NCBI RefSeq assembly: GCF_006345805.1
Contig: NC_042998.1
Location: 2,666,001-2,730,000 of the forward strand
From: Octopus sinensis
Lineage: Eukaryota
Reading direction: 5' to 3'
Length of the DNA stretch: 64,000 bases
The position numbers and the translations under genes were made by a program. Numbering within the stretch: position 1 is the stretch's first letter; every line of letters begins with the position of its first letter. The notes below the pieces were generated by a model. It was not told where the DNA came from and ran no database searches. It saw nothing but the letters and a program-made list of their open reading frames with translations. This document shows, in pieces, positions 110 through 59,700 of this stretch.

Positions 110-600
110 GAGTGATGGACCTCACGGAGGCAAAGTGGCTGAGGTCCTTTCGAACACGCCTAACAGAGGTGAGGTGGCTGAGTACCTTTCGAATGGGCCT
201 TACAGAGGCGAAGTGGCCAAGTTCCTTTTGAACAGAACTCACGGAAATGAGGTGGCTGAGTTATTTTCAAGCGTTGGGCCTTGCTTGTGGAGGCATAGTG
301 GCTGAGCTCCCTCTGAGTGTTGGGCCTTATGTTGTGCTTGGGAAGAGGACCTATCAAGCCAAGCAAGATTGAAATTATGGCAGATACCGATGTCAAGCAA
401 ATGGCATCCATACCGGTGGCACATAAAAGCACCCATTACACTCTCGTAATGGTTGGCATTAGGAAGGGCATCCAGCTGTAGAAAACCATGTCAAATCAGA
501 CTGGAACCTGGCACAGCCTGCCAGTGTGCCAGCCCAGTCAAACCCTCCAACCCATGACAGCATGGACAACGGATGTTAAATGATGACGATGATGAAGATG
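110..600 (+). mobile_element. RTE-LINE-derived 3' end with a 39-bp minisatellite head and degenerate (GAT)n tail
   Basis: gtggctgag recurs at 135, 174, 213, 252; then ORF-end remnant (gtgcttgggaagaggacc...caagccaag), conserved 3' UTR and gatgacgatgatgaagat tail. Confidence 0.7.
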
Positions 601-1127: not shown

Positions 1128-1609
1128 CTGAAATAAAGAAAGAAAAATTTGGCTAAAATGAAATTGGACAGGACAAATATACCAATTAACAACTGAAATA
1201 CATAATTAAATCAATATAAATGATCATATAGGAAATCAGTATTATTCAATTAGAGAAAGTGAAACAGTTTTATCAAATCCTATGAAGGTTATTATTGTTT
1301 TAATGGTTTCAGTTGCCAGGCTGCGGCCAGGCTGGAGCACCGTCTTAATTTCTTTCTTTTTTTTTTAAAGTTTTGCGGTCACATTATGATTGAAAGTTGG
1401 TTGATGATCAAGTTTGTAGTTGCTGATCTCCCCTCAGTGTATCGTTGAATAGTTGGTTAGTCCAGTATTGTCGTTAGGAGTTCATCCAACAGTTTTTTTG
1501 AAAGTTTCAGTAGAGGTCTCTTTTATATTTCTCATCTCTTCGGGTAAAATAGTTCAATACTTGAGGACTTCTGAATATTAGACAGGTACAGTAGAGGGTT
1601 TTTGTTTGT

Positions 1610-2990
1610 GAGTTTGAAGAAGGTATATGTGGAAGCTGACGGTACCTACCAGTTTGAGCATTAAAATTCACTTTAATACAGATGTTCGGAACCTGCCCCT
1701 CCACGATCTTCCATACATACATAATAGTATATCTTTCTCTTTGGTGTTCAAGAGAGTAGAGGAACAGAGCTTTCAGGCATTCCTAATAATTAAGGCCATT
1801 AACCAAAGTTATTTTACTGGTCAATGTTCTTTGTAACCCTTCAGTTTCTTCTATGAAACCAGGTGAATTTGGTGACCAAAGCTGTGAGCGGTAATCCAAT
1901 CTGCTCAGAACTAAGGTTTTCCATAAAGTTAGCATAACCACGGGTTCTCTTGTCATGAAGGTTCGTAGGATCCATCCTGTGAGATGTCTGCATTTAGAGG
2001 TCAGTTTGGTGATGTGACTGATGAAAGATGCATCATTTGACATGATTATTTTTAAATCAGGTTTATCATGAGTGCTCCGACACCAAATATTGGGATTTAT
2101 GTCTATTCCCCCCATAATGAAGGGCCTGAAATTTTGATGTATTAAATTTCATATTTTTATCCACTCATTGATAAATGATATTCGGGTCATTTTGGAGTGT
2201 GATGGCATCCTCTGGAGTTTGGACAGCCATTGATATTTTTGTGTCACTGGCATAACTCATTAGGTTTGCCGATTGCACTTGTGAGCCCATGTTTGATAGG
2301 GTTATAGTAAATAACAATGGTCTTAGAACTGTACTCTGAGGTATACCACTTATTACGGGTGACTTTGCTGAGAGATTATTGCTTGCAGCAAGATTAATTC
2401 CTATCCTGTAGGAAGTCAAAGAGCCATTCTCCAAGTTCTCCTATGATACCAAGATCCCTTATCATATGACAGATGATTCCATGATCAATCTTGGCAAAAT
2501 CAAGGTATATGCAGTCAGAGTCCTGTCCATTCAGGAAATTTTTAAGGATAGTGCTATGGTGTGGTAATAGTTGTGTCAGGCAACCATGTCCAGTTTGAAA
2601 ACCATGCTGTGTATTATCTGAGTGGGTTTTCCTCAAGATACACAGTTATTCTTTTTCAGACAATGTGTTCTACAATTTTAGATGTGTGAGAAACAGGTCT
2701 GTAATTTTTTAGCTTCTGCCCTGCTACCTCCTTTATGGATAGGTGCTACTGTTGCTTCTTTCAATAGTTCTGGGAATATGCCGGTTTGAAGCGACTTTTG
2801 AAATAGCAACTTTAATGGCTTGGCAAGACTGTTTCTGCAGGTTTTCAATAGTATGGCTGGGAGACCATCTGGTCCTGGTGCTGAATTTGAATCTAAATCA
2901 TTAATAGCTGTAATTATGTCTTCTCCCATAATATCTAAAATCTCTAGATGTGTCAGTTGAATTCTCGGGATCAAAAGATGTGAAGAAAGG
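1610..2990 (-). mobile_element. Degraded CR1-group LINE reverse transcriptase region
   Basis: ORF fragments SAPGPDGLPAILLK, QHGFQTGHGCLTQLL, CIYLDFAK, SGIPQSTVLRPLLF, SYASDTK (YADD-like), YVWKIVEG; frameshifted. Confidence 0.9.
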
Positions 2991-4974: not shown

Positions 4975-5700
4975 ATCATGATCATCATCATTATCATTAT
5001 CATAAATGTTTAACGTCTGCTTTCCATGCTAGCATGGGTTGGATGATTTCACTGAAGAATGGCAAACCAGATGGCTGCACCAGGCTCCAATCTTGATGTG
5101 GCAGAGTTTCTACAGCTGGATGGCCTTCTTAACACCAACCACTCCTAGTGTAGTGGGTGCATTTATGTGCCACCAGCACGAGGGCCAGTCAGGCGGTACT
5201 GGCAATGGCCACACTCAAATGGTGTTTTTTACATGCCACCTGCACAGGAGCCAGTCAAGCGGCACTGGCAACGACCTCACTTGAATGTTTTTTTCACGTG
5301 CCAGTAACGCAATGATCACGCTCGAATGCTGCTTTTTATGTGCCACCAGCACAGAAGCCAGTCAGCTGCTCTGGCAACGATCACGCTGGGATGGTGCTCT
5401 TAGCGCTCCACTAGCACAGATGCCAGTCAACAAATTTGATTTCAACTTTGAGTTCACTTGCCTCAACAGGTCTTCGCAAGCAGTGTTTAATGTCCAATGA
5501 AGGAAAGGTACGCATAAGTGGGCTGGTTACACCCCTGGCATAGGCCATGGGTTATGGTCTCACTTGGCTTGCCGGGTCTTCTCAAGCACAGCATATTTCC
5601 AAAGGTCTCAGTCACTAGTCATTGCCTCTGTGAAGCCTAATGTTCAAAGGTCGTGCTTCACTACCTCATCCCAGGTCTTCCTGGGTCTACCTCTTCCCTC
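4975..5700 (-). mobile_element. RTE-LINE 3' end including the ORF C-terminus
   Basis: Minus-strand GRGRPRKTWDEVVKHDL*TLGFTEAMTSD*DLWKYAVLEKTRQAK* followed by the UTR and (GAT)n tail; this anchors the identity of all the shorter (GAT)n-tailed copies. Confidence 0.85.
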
Positions 5701-11172: not shown

Positions 11173-11395
11173 TTAAGTCTTTAGCAGTTGGATTACTCTG
11201 TCAAATGTAATGCTTATTTATTCATATTGTTTTGAACTAATAATACAACACCTTGCAGCTTTGAAATGTTGATGATGATTGTAAATTTTCAGACTGACAC
11301 TGCAGAGTAGGTGTTAAAGGCTGACTGGCCAGTTTGAACAGAAAACCAGTAGAATATTTGGCCCAGGTATGACTAGCTTAAATGCTAAGGGGTAA
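11173..11395. mobile_element. piggyBac-like (TTAA) MITE, degenerate
   Basis: Ends ttaagtctttagca / tgctaaggggtaa; homologous to the copies at 14615, 28726 and 52834. Confidence 0.6.
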
Positions 11396-13725: not shown

Positions 13726-14643
13726 TTTCCAGGTTACAGGAAAGTTAATAAGCAAAGAAGTCAATGGAAAAATACATTTCCCATTAAGAATTCCATGTTT
13801 GTTACAGCAAATTTATTTTCCTGAAGTGCAATGCTTTGGTCAGCCGAAATAAAAGAGATCTATAATCAAAAGTGTTACAGGTATGACAATTTCTTTTATT
13901 TCAGCATAGTATATTTACGAGTATATTATCCAATGTGTTATTTTTTAAGTGGGTAACTTGTTATTTAAGATTTAGTTGCCGTTTCTAACAAATTGAATCA
14001 CCAAGTAGAAATTGTCATTGACTTCAGCTAAGTTGATAAAGTAGAAACTAAATTTCTGTATCATTAATTAAGGAATCTAACAATTTACATCAGAGGGAGG
14101 AGGATCAATGCTACCAAGCTGGAACAGAGCTTTTTACATGAAAGAAGTTAAAAATTTACATTATCGAAAAATAAGTTTCCAAACAAAAACTGATCCAAAA
14201 GGAAATCACACAATTTGTAAACACTATGTACATTCCGACTGAAACTTTAAACATAAGCTAACTTCAGTAAATCTAGTCTATGTCCTTAACAATTGAATGT
14301 CTTAATGTAGTTGAACAATTGGATATATACATAAAAGTACTGAAAATTACAAGGAAAATACATTATTTATAAACTTAAGTTTTTAATATACTGCTTAATT
14401 GTCCATGTTTTTAATGCTACACTGCAAAATAAAGGATAAAAAGCATAGCTTTTAGGTCAGGAATTTTTACATTTTGCAGTTTGTGAGAAAAAAACTATGA
14501 ATATAGAACAAAACTTCAATTGTTAAATGTACAGTAAATACCTAATTTGAATCCTTATAATGAATGAATATTAAAGAATTGCAGTTGAATTTGTCATGAA
14601 AGCTGTGAAAAGATTTAACCTTTTAGTATTGAGGCTAGTTGTG

Positions 14644-14716
14644 GGGCTTGTGGCGCAATGGATAATGCGTCTGACTACGGATCAGAAGATTCCAGGTTCG
14701 AATTCTGGCAAGCTCG
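14644..14716 (+). tRNA. tRNA-Arg(ACG), full 73-nt cloverleaf, probably a retroposed pseudogene
   Basis: Acceptor stem GGGCTTG/CAAGCTC, anticodon stem TCTGA/TCAGA, loop CT-ACG-GA; near-identical to the canonical eukaryotic tRNA-Arg-ACG but with C23T and C61T; fused to an RTE 3' fragment. Confidence 0.85.
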
Positions 14717-14726
14717 CAAATGCTTT

Positions 14727-14902
14727 ACTACACTCACGGAGTGGTTGGCGTTAGGAAGGGCATCCAGCTGTAGAAACATTGCCAGATAAGATCGGAGCCT
14801 GGTGCAGCCTTCTGGCTTCCCAGATCCCCGGTCGAACCGTCCAACCCATGCTAGCATGGAGAACGGACGTTAAACGATGATGATGATGATGATGATGATG
14901 AT
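14727..14902 (+). mobile_element. RTE-LINE 3' UTR fragment with long (GAT)n tail, joined to tRNA-Arg
   Basis: actacactcacggagtggttggcg...cgttaaacgatgatgat..., nearly identical to the copies at 21170 and 55550. Confidence 0.9.
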
Positions 14903-15145
14903 GCTAACCTTATCAAATGTAATGCTTATTTAATCACACTGTTTTCAATTAATCAGCATTATCTTGTAGCTTTGAGATTTTGATGATATGACTGCTTACT
15001 TTTAGTATGACATTGTAGGCTAGGTGAGAGAGCCTGGATATGGCTAGTTTGCGCATAAAACAAGTAGAATATCCGGGCCAGATATAGCTGATCTAAATGT
15101 TAGAGGGCTGAGATGTGTGAAATGTGAAAATCAAATGAGACTTAC

Positions 15146-15278
15146 TCTCACACTGGACAGCTGCTTTATTTGCCATGCTCTTGTTACATACATGACACAG
15201 TGAAGTATTACTTATCGAGAGAGACACAAACTGGTGGGCATTTTTATGTTTGTTCTCTTTCTCTTTGCCATCTTTTCC
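15146..15278 (-). CDS. Coding exon: GKDGKEKENKHKNAHQFVSLSISNTSLCHVCNKSMANKAAVQCE, N-terminal part of a C1 zinc finger of Lbc-family RhoGEF type (AKAP13/ARHGEF2/18/28-like)
   Basis: ttttgcag acceptor, A|gtaagt donor, 133 bp, phase 0 to 1; H-x12-C-x2-C-x11-C motif; resembles the GEF-H1 C1 start (recalled as [20 protein letters not shown]). DH-PH domains are not in the window, so no symbol is assigned. Confidence 0.9.
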
Positions 15279-15326
15279 CTGCAAAATAAAAAAAAACAAA
15301 TAAGTTATTTTTTTTTTATTAAATAA

Positions 15327-16244: not shown

Positions 16245-16638
16245 TCTCTTTACTCTTTTAGTTGTTTCAGTTATTTGACTGTGGTCATGCTGGAGCACCG
16301 CCTTTAGTCGAGCAAATCAGCCCCAGGACTTATTCTTTGTAAGCCTAGTACTTATTCTATCGGTCTCTTTTGCTGAACCGCTAAGTGACGGGGACGTAAA
16401 CACACCAACATCGGTTGTCAAGCGATGGTAGGGGGACAAATACAGACACACAAACATATATATATATATACATATATACGACGGGCTTCTTTCAGTTTCC
16501 ATCTACCAAATCCACTCACAAGGCTTTGGTCGACCCGAGACTATAGAAGACACTTGCCCAAAGTGCCACGCAGTGGGACTGAACCCGGGACCATGTGGTT
16601 GGTAAACAAGCTACTTACCACACAGCCACTCCTGCACC
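16245..16638 (-). mobile_element. tRNA-derived SINE family B
   Basis: Full-length match to the other family B copies. Confidence 0.85.
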
Positions 16639-18140
16639 TATTGTTTTATTTTTAGAATATTGTAAGGTAAGTGTGAGAGGTTAGATCTGGTCAGTTTGAA
16701 CATAAAACCAGCAGAACATTTTGGCCAGATATGGCTGATTTAAATGCTAAAGGGTTGAACAGTAAGAAGAGAAACATTTTTTTATCTTTATGAAGTAGAA
16801 AATAACATTTTAATGCCAATGTCTAACTTGCAGCTGAGGGTCACCCTGCCACCTGGTCTGTTGGGTGCCGCTAGCCATGTTGACTTTGCTGCAAGCGCTG
16901 ACAATTAGACACAAAGTTCCAACTCCAACCAAGATTCCACACTGCAGACACTGATATATCCAGCAGTCCAAATTGGATATAGACAACATCAGTTTCACTT
17001 GTGTGTGGGGACCTGCAACTATTATGGGCCCTGTTCCTCTTCTCCTGACTAACTCATAAATAAAAAAAAAAGTAGAAATTAGAAGCAGATCGCTCAAAAT
17101 ATTAAGAACATAAATGACATTAAACGTAACCTTGCACACAAATAGAAATTTTCTCCTCTTCTCACACTTTCTTCCACTCTCTCTCTCTCTCTTCCTCCCT
17201 TTGTGTGTGTGTGTGTGTGTGTGTAGACATGCACACATTTACATATTAAGTAAGATTTATGACACTAAAAGTATAATACTTAAATAAAACCATACTAATT
17301 CCCCAATAACATAAATACTGTAATAGAAGCCCTACTTAAAATTATTATAATAGCTTACTTAGATTTGGATACTAGCATATTTTGTCAAATTTAACAATGC
17401 GTGTGTGTGTGTGTGTGTGTGTGTGTATTTATAGACATGTGTATTGCATCTGCATATTGTATACGTGTTTGTTTTTCACCCCCATTCTGTATGTTCTCAC
17501 CAAATTCACCGAAGAATTTTAGAAAAGAAGAAAGAGGAAAAAAGTAATTTTAAACAACTAGGTTACAGCAGAGAATTGTTTCAGAGCACACAACAATAAA
17601 ACGACTACAAAGTATAAAGAAAAGAAAATTATAGTCAGATAATAAATAAAAATACAATTTTTGATAAAGCAATACAAATGTATGACATGCTGATGCAAAG
17701 TACGTTAAACACCCACCTAACGTGAAATGAATACATTATATATGACAGTCTAAAAGTATCATTTTTTTTTTTAACGGAAAGAAGAAGAAAAAATACATAA
17801 TGCAGAACCAACTACTGGACATTTCTCATTCCTCAGTTCTAACATATCCCATTCTGACCTTCATAGCCTCGAGACTGCTTTCTCGGTGATAAATCTTGAA
17901 TTTGTTTTCGTTTTATTTTTCATTCTTAGAGAACTTTTCAAAATGCATTCTATGTCTCAAGAAGAAAAAAAAACATAAAAAATATATTTCTTTATTAACT
18001 GTTTTCTTTCTCTTTCAAAAGAAACTAACGAAATCATGGAACTGTCTTCAAAAAGTTTGGAAGTGTTAAATCTATCAGATGCCACAAAGAGGTTTTAACG
18101 TATTTCATTATAACCAAGACCTTGTTTTGAGAAAATTCTA

Positions 18141-18832: not shown

Positions 18833-19330
18833 GATCATCATCATCATCATTTAAGAACCATTTTCAATGCCAGCAAGGGTTAGACAGTTTGATGGGAGCT
18901 ACATCAGGCGCCAATTATCTGTTTTGGCTTGGTTTCTACAGCTGGATGTCCTTCCTAATACCAACCACTTTACAGAGTGTACAGAGTGTTCTTTTGACAT
19001 GTCACTGCATGGGTGCTTTTTACATGCCATCAGCACAGGTTCCCTTTCCATATTAACAGCACAGGTGCCCTTTACATGTCAACAGCACAGGTGCCCTTTA
19101 CATGTCAACAGCACAGGTGCCCTTTATGTGTCACCGGCACAGGTACCCTATACATGTACTGGCAATGATCCTGATTAACTTAACAGGATGTGTCTTTTCA
19201 AGCACAACAAACCAGCAGAAGTCTCAGTCATTTTTCATTGCCTCCATGAGGCTCAACAACCAAAGATCATATTTCACCACCTCACCACATGTCTTCTTGT
19301 GCCAACCCCTTCCACAAGTTCCTCATTGTG
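18833..19330 (-). mobile_element. Older RTE-LINE 3' end with ORF C-terminus and 26-bp tandem units
   Basis: Minus-strand KKTCGEVVKYDLWLLSLMEAMKND*DFCWFVVLEKTH; aacagcacaggtgccctttacatgtc repeats. Confidence 0.7.
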
Positions 19331-21320: not shown

Positions 21321-21896
21321 TTAGTATATGATGTCAAGAAAAAAAGATAAGCGTGCATGCACATGCACACAATAGTTAGAGCATTGCACTCAAAAGTGCA
21401 ATATCATGGTTTTTATTCGCAGCCTGGCAGTGCATTGTATTCTCAAGCAAAACACTTCATTTTATATTGCTCCAGTCCACTCAGCTGTAAACAGGTAATT
21501 CTGCAACAGACTGGCATCATATGAAAGCTTAAAGAAATGAGAGGAAGTGCACTGTGACCAGCAGTGTATAACAATGTCCGATAGATTGGTGGATAGTCAC
21601 ACATACACACACAATGGTCTTCTTTCTTTAGTTTCCATGACTCACAAAATTGACTCACAAAACTACAGTTGGCCTGGAGCTATAGAAGTCACCTGCCTAA
21701 AGATCCACAGAGTCAAATTGAACCCAAAACCATGTAGGTGAGAAGCAAACTTCTTAAATAGAATGTCACACCTGCACCTATATTATAACCACCAGTCACA
21801 TATGTTGCACCTATACATGTGTGTGCATACATGCTTATTCACCGGTCTAAGAAAGTTTTGATAAAAAAGAAAAGGAAAAAACTAAAGAAAACTATA

Positions 21897-22312
21897 GACG
21901 CAGGAGTGGCTGTGTGGTAAGTAGCTTGCTTACCAACCACATGGTTCCGGGTTCAGTCCCACTGTGTGGCATCTTGGGCAAGTGTCTTCTGCTATAGCCC
22001 CGGGCCGACCAATGCCTTGTGAGTGGATTTGGTAGACGGAAACTGAAAGAAGCCTGTCGTATATATGTATATATATATATATGTATATGTGTGTGTGTGT
22101 GTGTGTGTTTGTGTATCTGTGTTTGTCCCCCTAGCATTGCTTGACAACCGATGCTGGTGTGTTTACGTCCCCGTCACTTAGCAGTTCGGCAAAAGAGACC
22201 GATAGAATAAGTACTGGGCTTACAAAGAATAAGTCCCGGGGTCGAGTTGCTCAACTAAAGGCGGTGCTCCAGCATGGCCGCAGTCAAATGACTGAAACAA
22301 GTAAAAGAGAAA
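21897..22312 (+). mobile_element. SINE family B, young copy
   Basis: Near-consensus; A-rich TSD-like aaaactaaagaaaa on both sides. Confidence 0.9.
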
Positions 22313-28725: not shown

Positions 28726-28953
28726 TTCACTCTTGAGCATTTAAACCAGCCATATCTGGGCAAAATATTCTGCTTGTATTATGTTCAAACTGGCCAAGTC
28801 TGGTTTCACATATCAACCCTACAATATCATTAAAAAATTAATAGTTACCTTATCAAAATTTCATAGTTACAAGATAATTCATGATTAATTCAAAACAATG
28901 TTTTAAAAAAAAAAAGCATTACTTTTTATAGAATGTGACTGCTAAAGGATTAA
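28726..28953. mobile_element. piggyBac-like MITE (opposite orientation to the 11173 copy)
   Basis: Ends ...gctaaaggattaa; internal similarity to the other copies. Confidence 0.55.
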
Positions 28954-48050: not shown

Positions 48051-48554
48051 GGAGGGGGGTAGTAGAAAAGTAATAACAAAGTGCATATGTTGCTATTTAG
48101 CTCATGTCAGCCTGCAATGAGCAGTACTACGATCAAAGACATTCCAGCTGTGGCCTTCCTATCTTTATTCAAAACCACATTATCAGTGTCCTTTTCTCTT
48201 TTAAGACAGTATGGTATAATGGGAGAGAATTTCACTGCTATTTCTAGCAGTTTAAGCAACCTTGTAGAAGCACATTCTCAAATTGGTCAATGTCCTTTGA
48301 TGCTACTGCTGTTTAACTTCAAATCAGCCCCAATGAGGTATCACTATGATCAGAAGTTTTCCAACCATGACCATCTCACCCTTTTTAAAGGTATTTAGAA
48401 CTATTCTGTCTAAAGAGTATTTTCCTAAAGCAGCAGTGCATGATTTGGAGGGAATTTGGCTGCTATTTCTAGCAGAATCAGTGACTGGCTCAAAAATGTG
48501 TATGTTGTGTATGCATGCACACACACACAAACATACATATATATATATATATAT

Positions 48555-50722
48555 ATGTTAATAAAATAGAATATATGCATATATATAAACATATATGTAC
48601 GTACCTACCTCTACATGTACATATACACGCATATAAGTGTACAGGACACCAAAAAGACGTCGAACACATAGAGAGACGAAAAACATAGACACAAACCAAG
48701 GAACAAGACAAGCAAAAAAAGAGATACAGGACAATAAGCACAACGAAAAATCCCCTTCTTCAGTCGCTAAGGTTTCATCTACTAAACGTTTCGAAGGATA
48801 AAAGCGAGACGTATACTTCGAAGAAAACTTCCTTCCTGCGAAAAGCAAATCAATTAAAATTCTGAGATCTTTTCGCAGAGGGGTAAAAAAAGCAAGACGG
48901 TAACGACAGTACAAACATATAAACAGTAAAAAATATATATATAAACAGTGGAAAAATAAATATATAACAGTGAGAGACAGGACAAGGAGAACAAGATAAG
49001 AAGGGCTGTTAACGCCAGACGAAAAAAGTATTGCAAACGCTGGATTATAGTGGACGACGAGAGAGAAAAAATGTCGACCAGTAGCCTTAGAAGGCGGGCG
49101 AGAAAAGACAGGATAGCAGTTACGATGGAAGTATCGTCGCAGATGGACGACGGGAATGGGGGAGGAGGAGCAAGAGGAAGAGAGAGAAGAAGGGGAATGG
49201 TGCGAGGAGACCATGAAGAATGGTGAAAGGGAGAGAGAGAATGAAGAATGAGAGAGAGAGGAAGAGACAAGTTAAGTGAGGGAAAAAAGACGAAAAGGGA
49301 ATGGGAGAGAAAGAAAGAAAGATGCAGAGTCGCGTGAGAGTTAATATCAAGGCTAACTTGATAAACAGAACAATCTTACTTAATAGGGTGCGTGCGTTTA
49401 GTCGTATAATATGTTAATAAAATAGAACATATGCATATATATAAACATATATGTACGTACCTACCTCTACATGTACATATACACGCATATATATTTTTAC
49501 TGTTTATATGTTTGTACTGTCGTTACCGTCTTGCTTTTTTTTACCCCTCTGCGAAAAGATCTCAGAATTTTAATTGATTTGCTTTTCGCGGGAAGGAATT
49601 TTTCTTCGAAGTATACGTCTCGCTTTTATCCTTCGAAACGTTTAGTAGATGAAATCTTAGCGACTGAAGAAGGGGATTTTTCGTTGTGCTTATTGTCCTG
49701 TATCTCTCTTTTTTTTTTTGCTTGTCTTGTTCCTTGGTTTGTGTCTATGTGTTATGTGTTCGACGTCTTTTTGGTGTCCTGTACACATATATGCGTGTAT
49801 ATGTACATGTAGAGGTAGGTACGTACATATATGTTTATATATATGCATATGTTCTATTTTATTAACATATTATACGACTAAACGCACGCACCCTATTAAG
49901 TAAGATTGTTCTGTTTATCAAGTTAGCCTTGATATTAACTCTCACGCGACTCTGCATCTTTCTTTCTTTCTCTCCCATTCCCTTTTCGTTTTTTTTCCCT
50001 CACTTAACCTGTCTCTTCCTCTCTCTCTCATTCTTCATTCTCTCTCTCCCTTTCACCATTCTTCATGGTCTCCTCGCACCATTCCCCTTCTTCTCTCTCT
50101 TCCTCTTGCTCCTCCTCCCCCATTCCCGTCGTCCATCTGCGACGATACTTCCGTCGTAACTGCTATCCTGTCCTTTCTCGCCCGCCTTGTAAGGCTACTG
50201 GTCGACACATTTCCTCTCTCTCGTCGTCCACGATAATCCAGCGTTTGCAATACTTTTTTCGTCTGGCGTTAACAGCCCTTCTTATCTTGTTCTCCTTGTC
50301 CTGTCTCTCACTGTTATATATTTATTTTTCCACTGTTTATATATATATTTTTACTGTTTATATGTTTGTACTGTCGTTACCGTCTTGCTTTTTTTTACCC
50401 CTCTGCGAAAAGATCTCAGAATTTTAATTGATTTGCTTTTCGCGGGAAGGAATTTTTCTTCGAAGTATACGTCTCGCTTTTATCCTTCGAAACGTTTAGT
50501 AGATGAAATCTTAGCGACTGAAGAAGGGGATTTTTCGTTGTGCTTATTGTCCTGTATCTCTCTTTTTTTTTTGCTTGTCTTGTTCCTTGGTTTGTGTCTA
50601 TGTGTTATGTGTTCGACGTCTTTTTGGTGTCCTGTACACATATATGCGTGTATATGTACATGTAGAGGTAGGTACGTACATATATGTTTATATATATGCA
50701 TATGTTCTATCTTATTAACATA
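48555..50722. mobile_element. Tandem plus inverted array of an approximately 855-bp unit in a (TA)n tract (Penelope-like architecture)
   Basis: Left arm 48555 to about 49490 (period 856), right arm about 49490-50722 in the opposite orientation (period 854); no intact ORF. Confidence 0.7.
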
Positions 50723-51096
50723 TATATATATATATATATAATTTTTCACTTGTTCCAGTCATTAGACTGTGGCCAAGCTGGGGCACTGCCTTGAAGAATT
50801 TTAGTCGAAATTGACAACCCCAGTACTTATATTTTTTTTTTAATCTGGTACTTATTCTATCGGTCTCTTCTGCTGAACCACTAGGTCATGGGAGTGTAAA
50901 CACACCGACACCAGTTGCTAAGCAGTTGTAAAGTTAAACACAGAAACAAGCACACACATATATATATATATATAAATATATATGTATGTATACACAAAGG
51001 GCTTCTTTCAGTTTCTGTCTACCGAATCCTGTCACAAGGTCTTGGCCAGCCTGAGGCTATAGTAGAAGACACTTGCCCAAGGTGTCACAGTGGGAC

Positions 51097-51133
<37 letters not shown>

Positions 51134-51386
51134 TATCACTGCATCAGTCAGACTATTAGATGTTTACCTTGCTAGTTACAATGCACTTCCTTGCATTGTT
51201 TTAGCTTTCAAATGGTGCCACACCATTGGCCAGCCAGACAGCCCAACATTCCACTTGAACAGGACACACAAGTCCATCACAGGGTTACCCACTTGCAGCA
51301 CAGTGGACTGGAGCAACATGGGATGAAGTACCTTGCTCAAGAACACAATGCAAAAATGGTCTGGGAATCAAAAGGGATTAAATATA

Positions 51387-51548
51387 GGCGCAGGAGTGGC
51401 TGTGTGGTAAGTAGCTTGCTAACCAACCACATGGTTCCGGGTTCAGTCCCACTGCGTGGCATCTTGGGCGTCTTCTGCTATAGCCTCGGGCCGACCAATG
51501 CCTTGTGAGTGGATTTGGTAGACGGAAACTGAAAGAAGCCTGTCGTAC

Positions 51549-51606
<58 letters not shown>

Positions 51607-51808
51607 TTGTGTGTCTGTGTTTGTCCCCCTAGCATTGCTTGACAACCGATGCTGGTGTGTTTACGTCCCCGTCACTTAGCGGTTCAGCAAAAAGAGACTG
51701 ATAGAATAAGTACTGGGCTTACAAAGAATAAGTCCCGGGGTCGATTTGCTCGACTAAAGGCGGTGCTCCAGCATGGCCGCAGTCAAATGACTGAAACAAG
51801 TAAAAGAG
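51387..51808 (+). mobile_element. SINE family B, young copy
   Basis: Near-identical to the 21897 copy. Confidence 0.9.
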
Positions 51809-52833: not shown

Positions 52834-53064
52834 AAACCCTTTAGCACTCAGATTATACTGTCAAATGTAATGTTTGTTTATTCAATTTCTTTTGAATGAA
52901 CCATGTATATATATCTTGTAGCTTTGTAATTTTGATGATGTGATTGTTTATTTTAACAACAACATTACAGGGGGTGGTGTGAGAGGTTGGATCTGGCTGG
53001 TTCAAATATCAAACAGGTAGAATATTTGGGCCGGATATGGACTGTTTAAATGCCAAGTGTATAA
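52834..53064. mobile_element. piggyBac-like MITE
   Basis: aaccctttagca ... aaatgccaagtgtataa; homologous to the 11173 and 14615 copies. Confidence 0.6.
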
Positions 53065-55060: not shown

Positions 55061-55720
55061 AGCGCCGCCTCCACTGGCTTCTGTGCCGGTGGCACGTAAA
55101 ATACACCAATCTGACCGTACGACAGGCACCCATGCCAACCCCCTTGCTTGCGAAGACATGTTGGGGCAAGCGAAATCGAATCGAACCAGCCAGGTTCCCT
55201 GGTCTGGTGGTACGTAAAAAAGCACTATCCGACTCGTGGCCGATGCCAGTGCCGCCTCCGCTGGCTTCCGTGCCGGTGGCACGTAAAATACACCAATCTG
55301 ACCGTACAACAGGCACCCATGCCAACCCCCTTGCTTGCGAAGACATGTTGGGGCAAGCGAAATCGAAATCGAATTGAACCAGCCAGGATCCCTGGTCTGG
55401 TGGTACGTAAAAAGCACTATCCGACTCGTGGCCGATGCCAGCACCGCCTCGTCTGGCTTCCGTGCCAGTGGCACATAAAATACACCAATCCGACCGTGGC
55501 CGTTGCCAGCCTCGCCTGGCACCTGTGCAGGTGGCACGTAAAAAGCACCCACTACACTCACGGAGTGGTTGGCGTTGGGAAGGGCATCCAGCTGTAGAAA
55601 CATTGCCAAATTAGACTGGAGCCTGGTGCAGCCTTCTGGCTTCCCAGATCCCCGGTCGAACCGTCCAACCCATGCTAGCATGGAGAACGGACGTTAAACG
55701 ACGATGATGATGATGATGAT
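55061..55720 (+). mobile_element. RTE-LINE 3' UTR fragment with a 187-bp tandem duplication and (GAT)n tail
   Basis: gcacgtaaaatacacc at 55092 and 55279. Confidence 0.85.
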
Positions 55721-59029: not shown

Positions 59030-59700
59030 CGGTGGCACGTAAAAAGTACCCACTACAATCCCAGAGTGGTTGGCATTAGGAAAGGCATCCAGCTGTAGAA
59101 ACCTTGCCAGATCAGATTGGAGTCTTCATTCAAACCGTCCAACCCATATCAGCATAGAATGCGGATGCTAAATGACAATGATGATGATGATGACAGGCTT
59201 CTTTCAGTTTTCGTCTACCAAATCCACTCACAAGGTTATAATAGAAGACACTTGCCCAAGGTGCCATGCAGTGGGACTGAACCCTGGACCATGTGGTTGG
59301 GAAACAGGCTTCTTACCACGGTTCGACCGGGGTCTGGGAAGCCAGGGGCTGCACCAGGCTCCAGTCTGATCTGGCAGTGTTTCTACAGCTGGATGCCCTT
59401 CCTAATGCCAACCACTCCACGAGTGTAGTGGGTGCTTTTTACGTGCCACCTGCACAGGTGCCAGGGGAGTCTGGCATCGGCCACGATAGGTTGGTGCTTT
59501 TAATGTGCCACTGGCACGGAAGCCAGCCAAGGCGGAGCTGGCATCGGCCACGTTCGGATGGTGCTTTTTATGTACCACCGGCACAGAAGCCAGTCGAGGC
59601 GGCGCTGGCATCGGCCACGTTCGGATGGTGCTTTTTATGTGCCACCAGCACAGGTATCACAACTACTATTTCCATTGATATTTATTTCGATGTAATTGTA
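59030..59700. mobile_element. Cluster: RTE UTR (+, 59030-59192), SINE B fragment (-, 59195-59318), RTE UTR (-, 59320-59700)
   Basis: Abutting fragments recognisable from the other copies. Confidence 0.75.

Follow-up and report, generated by a model that had tools for sequence, protein, structure and literature searches.

In a 64,000-nucleotide stretch of Octopus sinensis DNA (NCBI RefSeq assembly GCF_006345805.1, contig NC_042998.1, positions 2,666,001 to 2,730,000; here called the window, with positions counted from its first base), a 265-bp insert at 14638-14902 joins a leader, a tRNA-Arg(ACG), a trailer, the 3' end of a long interspersed nuclear element (LINE) and (GAT)9 inside a miniature inverted-repeat transposable element (MITE). 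We propose that this insert arose by one LINE-mediated retroposition in which complementary DNA (cDNA) was made from two RNAs in succession, so that the chimera was created at this very insertion as a one-off product, and we put the probability of this origin at roughly 45%. The observations on which the proposal builds are held with much greater confidence, and we take as shown the anatomy of the insert, its arrival as a single unit, the LINE nature of its tail, the precursor tRNA (pre-tRNA) nature of its head and the similar divergence of the two halves. From these we infer that the two RNAs were joined by template switching and that no progenitor copy came before this one.

All of the elements that an earlier reading by a model, made from the letters alone (the sequence-only reading), had listed for the insert were found in place by inspection of the sequence, ARAGORN and Rfam. 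The presence of a LINE part was borne out as well, while its proposed extent of 175 bp plus a tail was not, since we measured 149 bp plus 27 bp of (GAT)9, or 176 bp in total. As that reading had also pointed out, the combination of a tRNA head with a LINE tail resembles the architecture of a short interspersed nuclear element (SINE), both parts lying on the same strand with the tRNA 10 nt upstream of the tail. A tRNA and a same-strand LINE tail that exactly fill the extra DNA in a MITE are no chance arrangement.

The tRNA head and the LINE tail

ARAGORN identified a sole tRNA in the 64-kb window, tRNA-Arg(ACG) at 14644-14717, and Rfam model RF00005 matched 14644-14716 from end to end with 51.9 bits (gathering score 29). 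For comparison we used three contigs (L002, L003 and L004) obtained by a protein-word search with an open reading frame (ORF) crossing the tRNA, the matches being ORFs that lie over eukaryotic tRNA-Arg(ACG) genes. All three hold the same intact 73-nt gene, GGGCTTGTGGCGCAATGGATAACGCG...GGTTCGAATCCTGGCAAGCTCG, which scores 62.8 bits by Rfam, and the head of the insert is identical to it at 71 of 73 positions. The two substitutions singled out in the sequence-only reading, C23T and C61T, proved to be the only differences from these genes on three unrelated contigs, and the proposal that they represent decay is supported. C23T is a transition at a CpG that converts the G12-C23 pair to G-U, and C61T hits both the B box and the invariant G53-C61 pair (now G53-U61). 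The A box (TGGCGCAATGG) is identical to that of the intact genes and the B box (GGTTCGAATTC) is defective only at C61T, a change that, judging from the B-box consensus, should today cripple TFIIIC binding. No T4 run is found inside the insert, which has only a TTT at 14724; the first TTTT lies at 14942, 226 nt past the 3' end of the tRNA. We also considered a functional tRNA-Arg(ACG) gene, which is ruled out by C61T, by the G12-U23 pair and by the presence of only TTT after the trailer. One of the comparison contigs (L003 1-2466, an ENA metagenome contig from PRJEB7840) is eukaryotic and carries eight tRNA genes in 2.5 kb (five for Pro and single ones for Met, Arg and Lys); the Arg(ACG) gene among them has exactly the sequence inferred for the ancestor of the insert head.

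The ends of the head are those of a transcript that has not been processed. In the intact genes on L002-L004 the trailer is 7-9 nt long and is followed by a run of 4-5 T, and in the insert gttgtg is probably a pre-tRNA leader, with the purine start that a pre-tRNA would carry. Given the TTT at the end of the trailer and the lack of a CCA behind the discriminator base, the head was copied from a primary RNA polymerase III (Pol III) transcript or from the gene itself, and not from mature tRNA. The leader, the T-ending trailer and the missing CCA thus agree with the earlier suggestion of an unprocessed pre-tRNA as its source.

BLASTN of the insert against the window returned about 15 further copies of insert positions 90-265 and no further copy of positions 1-89. 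About 10 tail copies are also present in a 20-kb stretch of Octopus vulgaris (OX597840.1; L001), which was reached through an O. vulgaris ORF matching the LINE tail. The tail therefore occurs about 25 times in the 84 kb made up of the window and L001, with ~16 tails per 64 kb in the window. The insert tail is 83-97% identical to the closer window copies and 70% identical to the most diverged one. In the closer copies the similarity begins at one common base (ACTACACTC...), and it is this LINE position that the TTT of the trailer abuts. Among the 13 other tail copies examined, 12 are preceded by a '...GGTGGCACGTAAAAAGCACC(C)' motif and not by a tRNA, and in longer LINE copies this motif sits in ~60-bp tandem units.

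Two diverged copies, 4981-5697(-) and 18834-19313(-), carry the end of a LINE ORF, followed by a 3' untranslated region (3'UTR) of several hundred bp with the tandem units and then by the tail. In these two 5'-truncated copies the same 3'UTR and tail come after the ORF C-terminus, which establishes the tail as a true LINE 3' end, as had been claimed. The majority of the copies in the window have lost the 5' part of the LINE and differ in length, the truncation commonly falling within a few hundred bases. The C-terminus of the ORF reads GRGRPRKTWDEVVKHDL*TLG..D*DLWKYAVLEKTRQAK*, and the two stops within it, both TGA, may be decayed CGA codons. HMMER searches with the 45-residue C-terminus returned mostly short fragments that end in this motif (P0054, 80% identical) and one longer match, P0074, that has RVT_1 upstream of the motif. 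Six-frame reading showed that the two copies with an ORF end break off shortly before the C-terminus, and no reverse transcriptase (RT) domain adjoins any tail copy in the window. As far as is known, the C-terminal motif is not specific to one clade. The assignment to RTE in the sequence-only reading is therefore neither confirmed nor refuted; the (GAT)n end and the T-stretch at P-13 to P-10 of the target-site duplication are compatible with it, microsatellite 3' ends are not exclusive to RTE, and the T-stretch was seen at one site only. A trinucleotide microsatellite end is compatible with RTE (PMC9115989, PMC6007223), and a 3'UTR of several hundred bp is long and not typical for RTE.

The same tail has also become a satellite in O. 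vulgaris, where L001 3682-4496 consists of 5.9 head-to-tail 137-bp units that are 97% alike, each made of tail positions ~34-148 plus the microsatellite. A degenerate fragment of a different LINE lies at 1507-2974(-) of the window, with broken ORFs, a weak RVT_1 match (E 0.069) and an 'LDYRSQLWSP' motif, and is not joined to a (GAT)n tail.

The two halves of the insert are of similar age. In an alignment of 13 tails, the insert and the tail at 55551-55720 have three derived characters in common (ACATTGCC, an extra T in AGATCCCC, and GGAGAAC). The tail at 55551-55720 belongs to the LINE copy at 55064-55720(+), in which a 3'UTR with ~60-bp tandem units is followed by the tail and (GAT)6, with (AT)n flanks. 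Private differences in the insert tail number 3 in 149 bp, compared with 2 in 73 for the tRNA, and the insert tail is no more diverged from the 55551-55720 LINE copy than that copy is from the consensus. Head and tail are thus about equally diverged, as expected if they arrived jointly from sources current at the time.

Insertion into a host MITE

The repeat that forms the right flank of the insert has copies at 11201-11370, 28738-28930, 52861-53052 and 16646-16758. When the empty site was reconstructed with one GCTA kept, it was colinear across the junction with the first three of these, which are full-length, and with L001 940-1153, for which BLASTN crosses the reconstructed junction in a single high-scoring segment pair. 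Because removal of the insert together with one GCTA restores colinearity with these four copies, the results indicate that the whole 265 bp arrived in one insertion with a GCTA duplication. Two proposals of the sequence-only reading therefore hold, namely that the insert entered the MITE as a single unit and that the two flanks are parts of one MITE. No tRNA is present in any of the other MITE copies. The insertion point lies 19 nt inside the left end of the MITE. At ~25% divergence among themselves, the MITE copies are much older than the insert.

The host is a piggyBac-like MITE, because the L001 copy reads TTAA-CCCTTAAG...CTAACGGG-TTAA. Members of this family are ~210 bp long, with TTAA flanks and CCCTTTAG...CTAAAGGG ends. 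By hand count, the spacing of conserved MITE motifs with one GCTA is 17 nt, compared with 16 nt in two of the four other copies, and the target duplication is therefore 4, or at most 5, bp long. A 7-bp duplication, TAACCTT (14617-14623 and 14905-14911), was also considered and was rejected on the grounds that the intervening bases align with the MITE terminal repeat.

Near the insert, 15147-15282(-) resembles an exon (ttttgcag|GGAAAAG...GTGAGA|gtaagt) that would encode GKDGKEKENKHKNAHQFVSLSISNTSLCHVCNKSMANKAAVQCE, the first half of a C1 domain. The Pfam match to C1_1 (E 0.0023) is below the cut-off, and no protein in the word-indexed database matches this putative exon. Should this be a true exon, the neighboring intron would contain the insert in antisense orientation.

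Table 1. Positions in the window of the parts of the insert, its host MITE and two related LINE copies
Feature	Position	Strand	Basis
5' leader gttgtg, 6 nt	14638-14643	+	Outside the MITE alignment and the mature tRNA
tRNA-Arg(ACG), 73 nt, full cloverleaf, with C23T and C61T	14644-14716	+	ARAGORN, Rfam, comparison with intact genes
3' trailer caaatgcttt, 10 nt, TTT end, without CCA	14717-14726	+	Sequence; trailers of the L002-L004 genes
Last 149 bp of an abundant LINE 3'UTR (5'-truncated tail)	14727-14875	+	Further copies in the window and L001
(GAT)9 microsatellite, 27 bp, LINE 3' terminus	14876-14902	+	Other tail copies end in (GAT)3-9
GCTA, 5' copy of the target-site duplication	14634-14637	+	Sequence; MITE alignment
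GCTA, 3' copy of the target-site duplication	14903-14906	+	Sequence; MITE alignment
TTTT stretch 10-13 nt upstream of the first base of the duplication	14621-14624	+	Sequence
Left end of host MITE: TTAA (14615-14618), then terminal inverted repeat CCTTTTAG... to the insertion point	14615-14637	.	Four-copy alignment
Rest of host MITE to right terminal repeat ...TTAGAGGG	14907-15107	.	Alignment with MITE copies
5'-truncated LINE, closest relative of the insert tail	55064-55720	+	96.6% identity over the 149-bp tail, three common derived characters
5'-truncated LINE with ORF C-terminus, 3'UTR, tail and microsatellite	4981-5697	-	C-terminus matches LINE-type proteins

Template switching or a SINE family

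In the mechanism that we propose, the LINE enzyme would have nicked the MITE target ~10 nt downstream of the TTTT stretch, primed on the (GAT)n end of its own RNA and copied 176 nt of the 3' end. Just before the 3'-most 'GTAAAAAGCACCC' unit it would have switched to the 3' end of a nascent pre-tRNA-Arg(ACG) (...UGCUUU), and the RT would then have copied the pre-tRNA to its 5' end, adding the trailer, the tRNA and the 6-nt leader. Second-strand synthesis would have left the 4-bp GCTA duplication. A T-stretch near P-10 of the duplication has been described for RTE-related retroposons (PMC6007223), and in the single site available here the TTTT occupies P-13 to P-10.

The position of the junction suggests how the switch may have been placed. 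Two details fit a switch better than a truncation at an arbitrary point. One is that only 3 nt separate the junction from the 3'-most GTAAAAAGCACCC unit upstream of it, which is where the RT would first encounter a unit of this kind. The other is that the trailer ends in UGCUUU, a hexamer complementary to AAAGCA in this LINE unit, 3 nt from the switch point. Anchored matches of 6 nt or longer turned up in 1.3% of shuffled versions of the 30-nt LINE stretch and in 1.6% of 30-nt windows taken at random; the pairing fits a switch at p about 0.015, which we regard as a lead and not as proof. On this model the pairing site lies in the first unit met by the RT, which explains a junction placed where the units give way to the tail. 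Any Pol III transcript ending in U could pair with the A5 run of the LINE units in the same way. We would go further only tentatively, and with somewhat less than even confidence, in suggesting that the insert is a unique, de novo sense chimera made by a non-L1 LINE in a cephalopod, with the switch set by pairing of the U end to the A-rich GTAAAAAGCA unit. The product would be a competent proto-SINE, with A and B boxes, no internal T4 and the recognition end of the LINE at its 3' terminus, and Pol III would read through the tail to the TTTT at 14942.

A second template switch was considered from an 8-mer, TAGTTGTG, common to the 5' junction and the LINE 3'UTR. We judged this identity to be chance, because three LINE copies match further upstream and the 'ta' belongs to the duplication. 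The 8-mer (14635-14642) also occurs near the 5' end of the truncated 3'UTR copies at ~21020, 4070 and 59700 (...aaattgTAGTTGTGatacc...).

Several features of the head and the tail favor a chimera made at this insertion. Only two transitions, which look local, separate the head from the cellular tRNA, and nothing sets the tail apart from contemporary LINE copies. RNase P and RNase Z should moreover cleave an intact cloverleaf, parting the head from its tail and making the chimera a poor SINE master. Other considerations weigh against a one-off origin by template switching. The U-end pairing was noticed post hoc, is weak (-5.2 kcal/mol) and fits an earlier progenitor chimera equally well. The 4-bp duplication is short compared with those of two LINE copies, 437-600(+) and 55064-55720(+), which are 10 bp (GTCAGAATAA) and at least 8 bp ((AT)n) long, respectively. 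A family of ~1000 copies is ~ten times likelier to be met in a random 64-kb window than ~100 scattered one-offs, and the count of a single junction covers 84 kb.

These considerations lead directly to the strongest alternative, in which the insert is a copy of a young SINE family of low to moderate copy number, or the offspring of one master locus, and was inserted as a LINE-mobilized Pol III transcript. The progenitor of such a family could have formed by an earlier template switch or from a LINE fragment in the terminator of a tRNA-Arg gene. We consider this reading nearly as probable as the one-off origin, and likewise short of an even chance. The architecture is that of a simple tRNA-headed SINE with a LINE tail and is self-consistent, with an intact A box, a B box one mutation off and no T4 from the tRNA to the end of the tail, and the 6-nt leader puts the Pol III start at the first base of the element. 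The partner LINE is extremely abundant, and an element that a random window happens to contain will more often be a family member than the product of a unique event. Against a family, the head shows no diagnostic departure from the cellular tRNA beyond two decay-like transitions, the cloverleaf is intact and should be processed off its tail, and the divergence of the tail from a bona fide LINE copy does not exceed that of this copy from the consensus. We also found no second head or junction in the 84 kb, a result that excludes only very abundant families of at least several tens of thousands of copies, and no tRNA was found in the 20 kb of L001 despite its ~ten tail copies. The junction pattern occurred 0 times in metagenome contigs, and a conserved 23-mer control from the tail, which an octopus genome must contain very many times, was likewise found 0 times in metagenome, prokaryote-genome and viral contigs, so that this search is uninformative. 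For the tail, a protein-word search returned a single ORF, from O. vulgaris, and for the junction it returned none; the database hardly samples octopus repeats, so that copy number is not constrained by this negative. Full-text literature searches revealed no description of a tRNA/LINE-tail unit of this kind.

It is very improbable that the insert records two events, in which a LINE with a truncated 5' end landed right after the T-run of a tRNA-Arg gene or retropseudogene that the MITE had already contained. RTE-type LINEs do nick near T stretches (PMC6007223), and the ATGCT that the trailer (caaATGCTtt) has in common with the 3' end (gATGCTaacc) is readable as a duplication of the tail only; the 'ATG' of the downstream ATGCT, however, is part of the (GAT)n repeat. 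The four tRNA-free MITE copies, the restriction of the extra DNA to exactly a tRNA unit plus tail within one GCTA pair, and the equal divergence of the halves all speak against a resident tRNA. A tailless pre-tRNA has no known route into the MITE, and without the tail the residual trailer (caaatgctaacctta...) would reach its first T4 terminator only at 14942. An assembly or read chimera, or the capture of filler DNA during double-strand break repair, is more improbable still: nothing specific favors it beyond the reliance on one assembled sequence, and it is contradicted by the clean boundaries with a target duplication, by a microsatellite end that abuts the duplication as in other LINE copies, by a head that starts and ends like a Pol III primary transcript, and by the common orientation of head and tail.

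Relation to known chimeras and to SINE genesis

The insert can be placed between two kinds of known element. The standard plan of a SINE joins a tRNA head to a LINE tail (PMC5786205, PMC6007223), and the insert has the expected tRNA head with Pol III boxes, LINE tail from the same genome and flanking target-site duplication. In these respects it resembles the RTE-tailed tRNA SINEs (Kojima 2018, PMC5786205) and the Au-like SINEs (PMC6007223), which combine an A/B-box head with a same-genome LINE 3' end, a microsatellite and a target-site duplication. Unlike SINE2/tRNA families, however, it keeps a full-length tRNA (97% identical) as its head, flanked by the leader and trailer of that tRNA, and it has no body or CORE domain. 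Those families amplify from genomic copies, whereas the insert is known from one copy in the 84 kb. By the SINEBase definition (PMC3531059), a family should comprise many dispersed copies that descend from genomic SINE copies and have in common substitutions that are absent from the cellular RNA gene.

The second kind comprises products of template switching, which is established for L1 and Pol III RNAs by U6/L1 chimeras (PMC4476161). Like these, the insert contains a sense Pol III transcript with a U-tract end and a 5'-truncated LINE part; the small RNA is joined at its own U-ending 3' end, and one duplication pair surrounds the whole. In mammals, tRNA/L1 chimeras have been reported at 21 loci and are mostly antisense half-tRNAs (bioRxiv 10.1101/2025.02.02.635956). 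Unlike them, the insert has a whole pre-tRNA in sense and a microsatellite-ended, non-L1 LINE, and is found in a mollusc. A whole pre-tRNA in sense is the only arrangement that could found a SINE.

Octopuses reportedly have the SINE families OK, OR1 and OR2, said to have been described by Ohshima and Okada in 1994, and the heads of OR1 and OR2 are presumably derived from tRNA-Arg. The insert is like these families in its host group and in its tRNA-derived head. Membership in OR1 or OR2 was considered, with these families compared by description, and was rejected because every base of the insert belongs to the leader, the tRNA, the trailer or the LINE tail; the trailer abuts the tail at 14727, leaving no room for a CORE. 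OR1 or OR2 has been listed among the CORE-SINEs (PMC4758252, PMC4824008). Another very abundant tRNA-like SINE (...GGTTCAGTCCCACTGCGTGGCACCTTGGGCAAGTGTCTTCTACTATAGCC...) with an apparent CORE-type center is present in the window at 59318(-) and, among other places, at 16560-16650, 21892-22137 and 51378-51635, and the copy at 59318 interrupts a LINE tail. This GGTTCAGTCCCACTGCGTGGCACCTTGGGCAAGTGTCTTCTACTATAGCC SINE may be an OR-type family of the literature.

Elsewhere in the window, 48537-50739 is a large, nearly perfect inverted duplication with arm pairs of 118-434 nt that are 96-98% complementary (for example 49059-49492 with 49787-50220), and it yields the same long spurious ORFs on both strands.

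The prevailing view is that SINEs begin by accident, when a Pol III transcript becomes joined to the 3' end of a LINE. To our knowledge, nearly all SINEs have been seen long after their origin, when their heads are degraded. The insert is a single locus of a known kind whichever origin is correct, and with a whole pre-tRNA and a recognizable LINE tail it displays the junction in its original form. Base pairing between the U-tail and the A-rich repeat of the LINE 3'UTR offers a testable suggestion for the choice of the switch site. If the insert belongs to a family, this family would be unusually young, with an intact tRNA head, and would be useful for the question of how such transcripts escape RNase P and RNase Z. 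If the one-off origin is true, the first step of SINE genesis would have been caught here before amplification, and if there are more such junctions in the genome, involving this tRNA or others, they would give the rate of SINE 'attempts' for an extremely prolific LINE.

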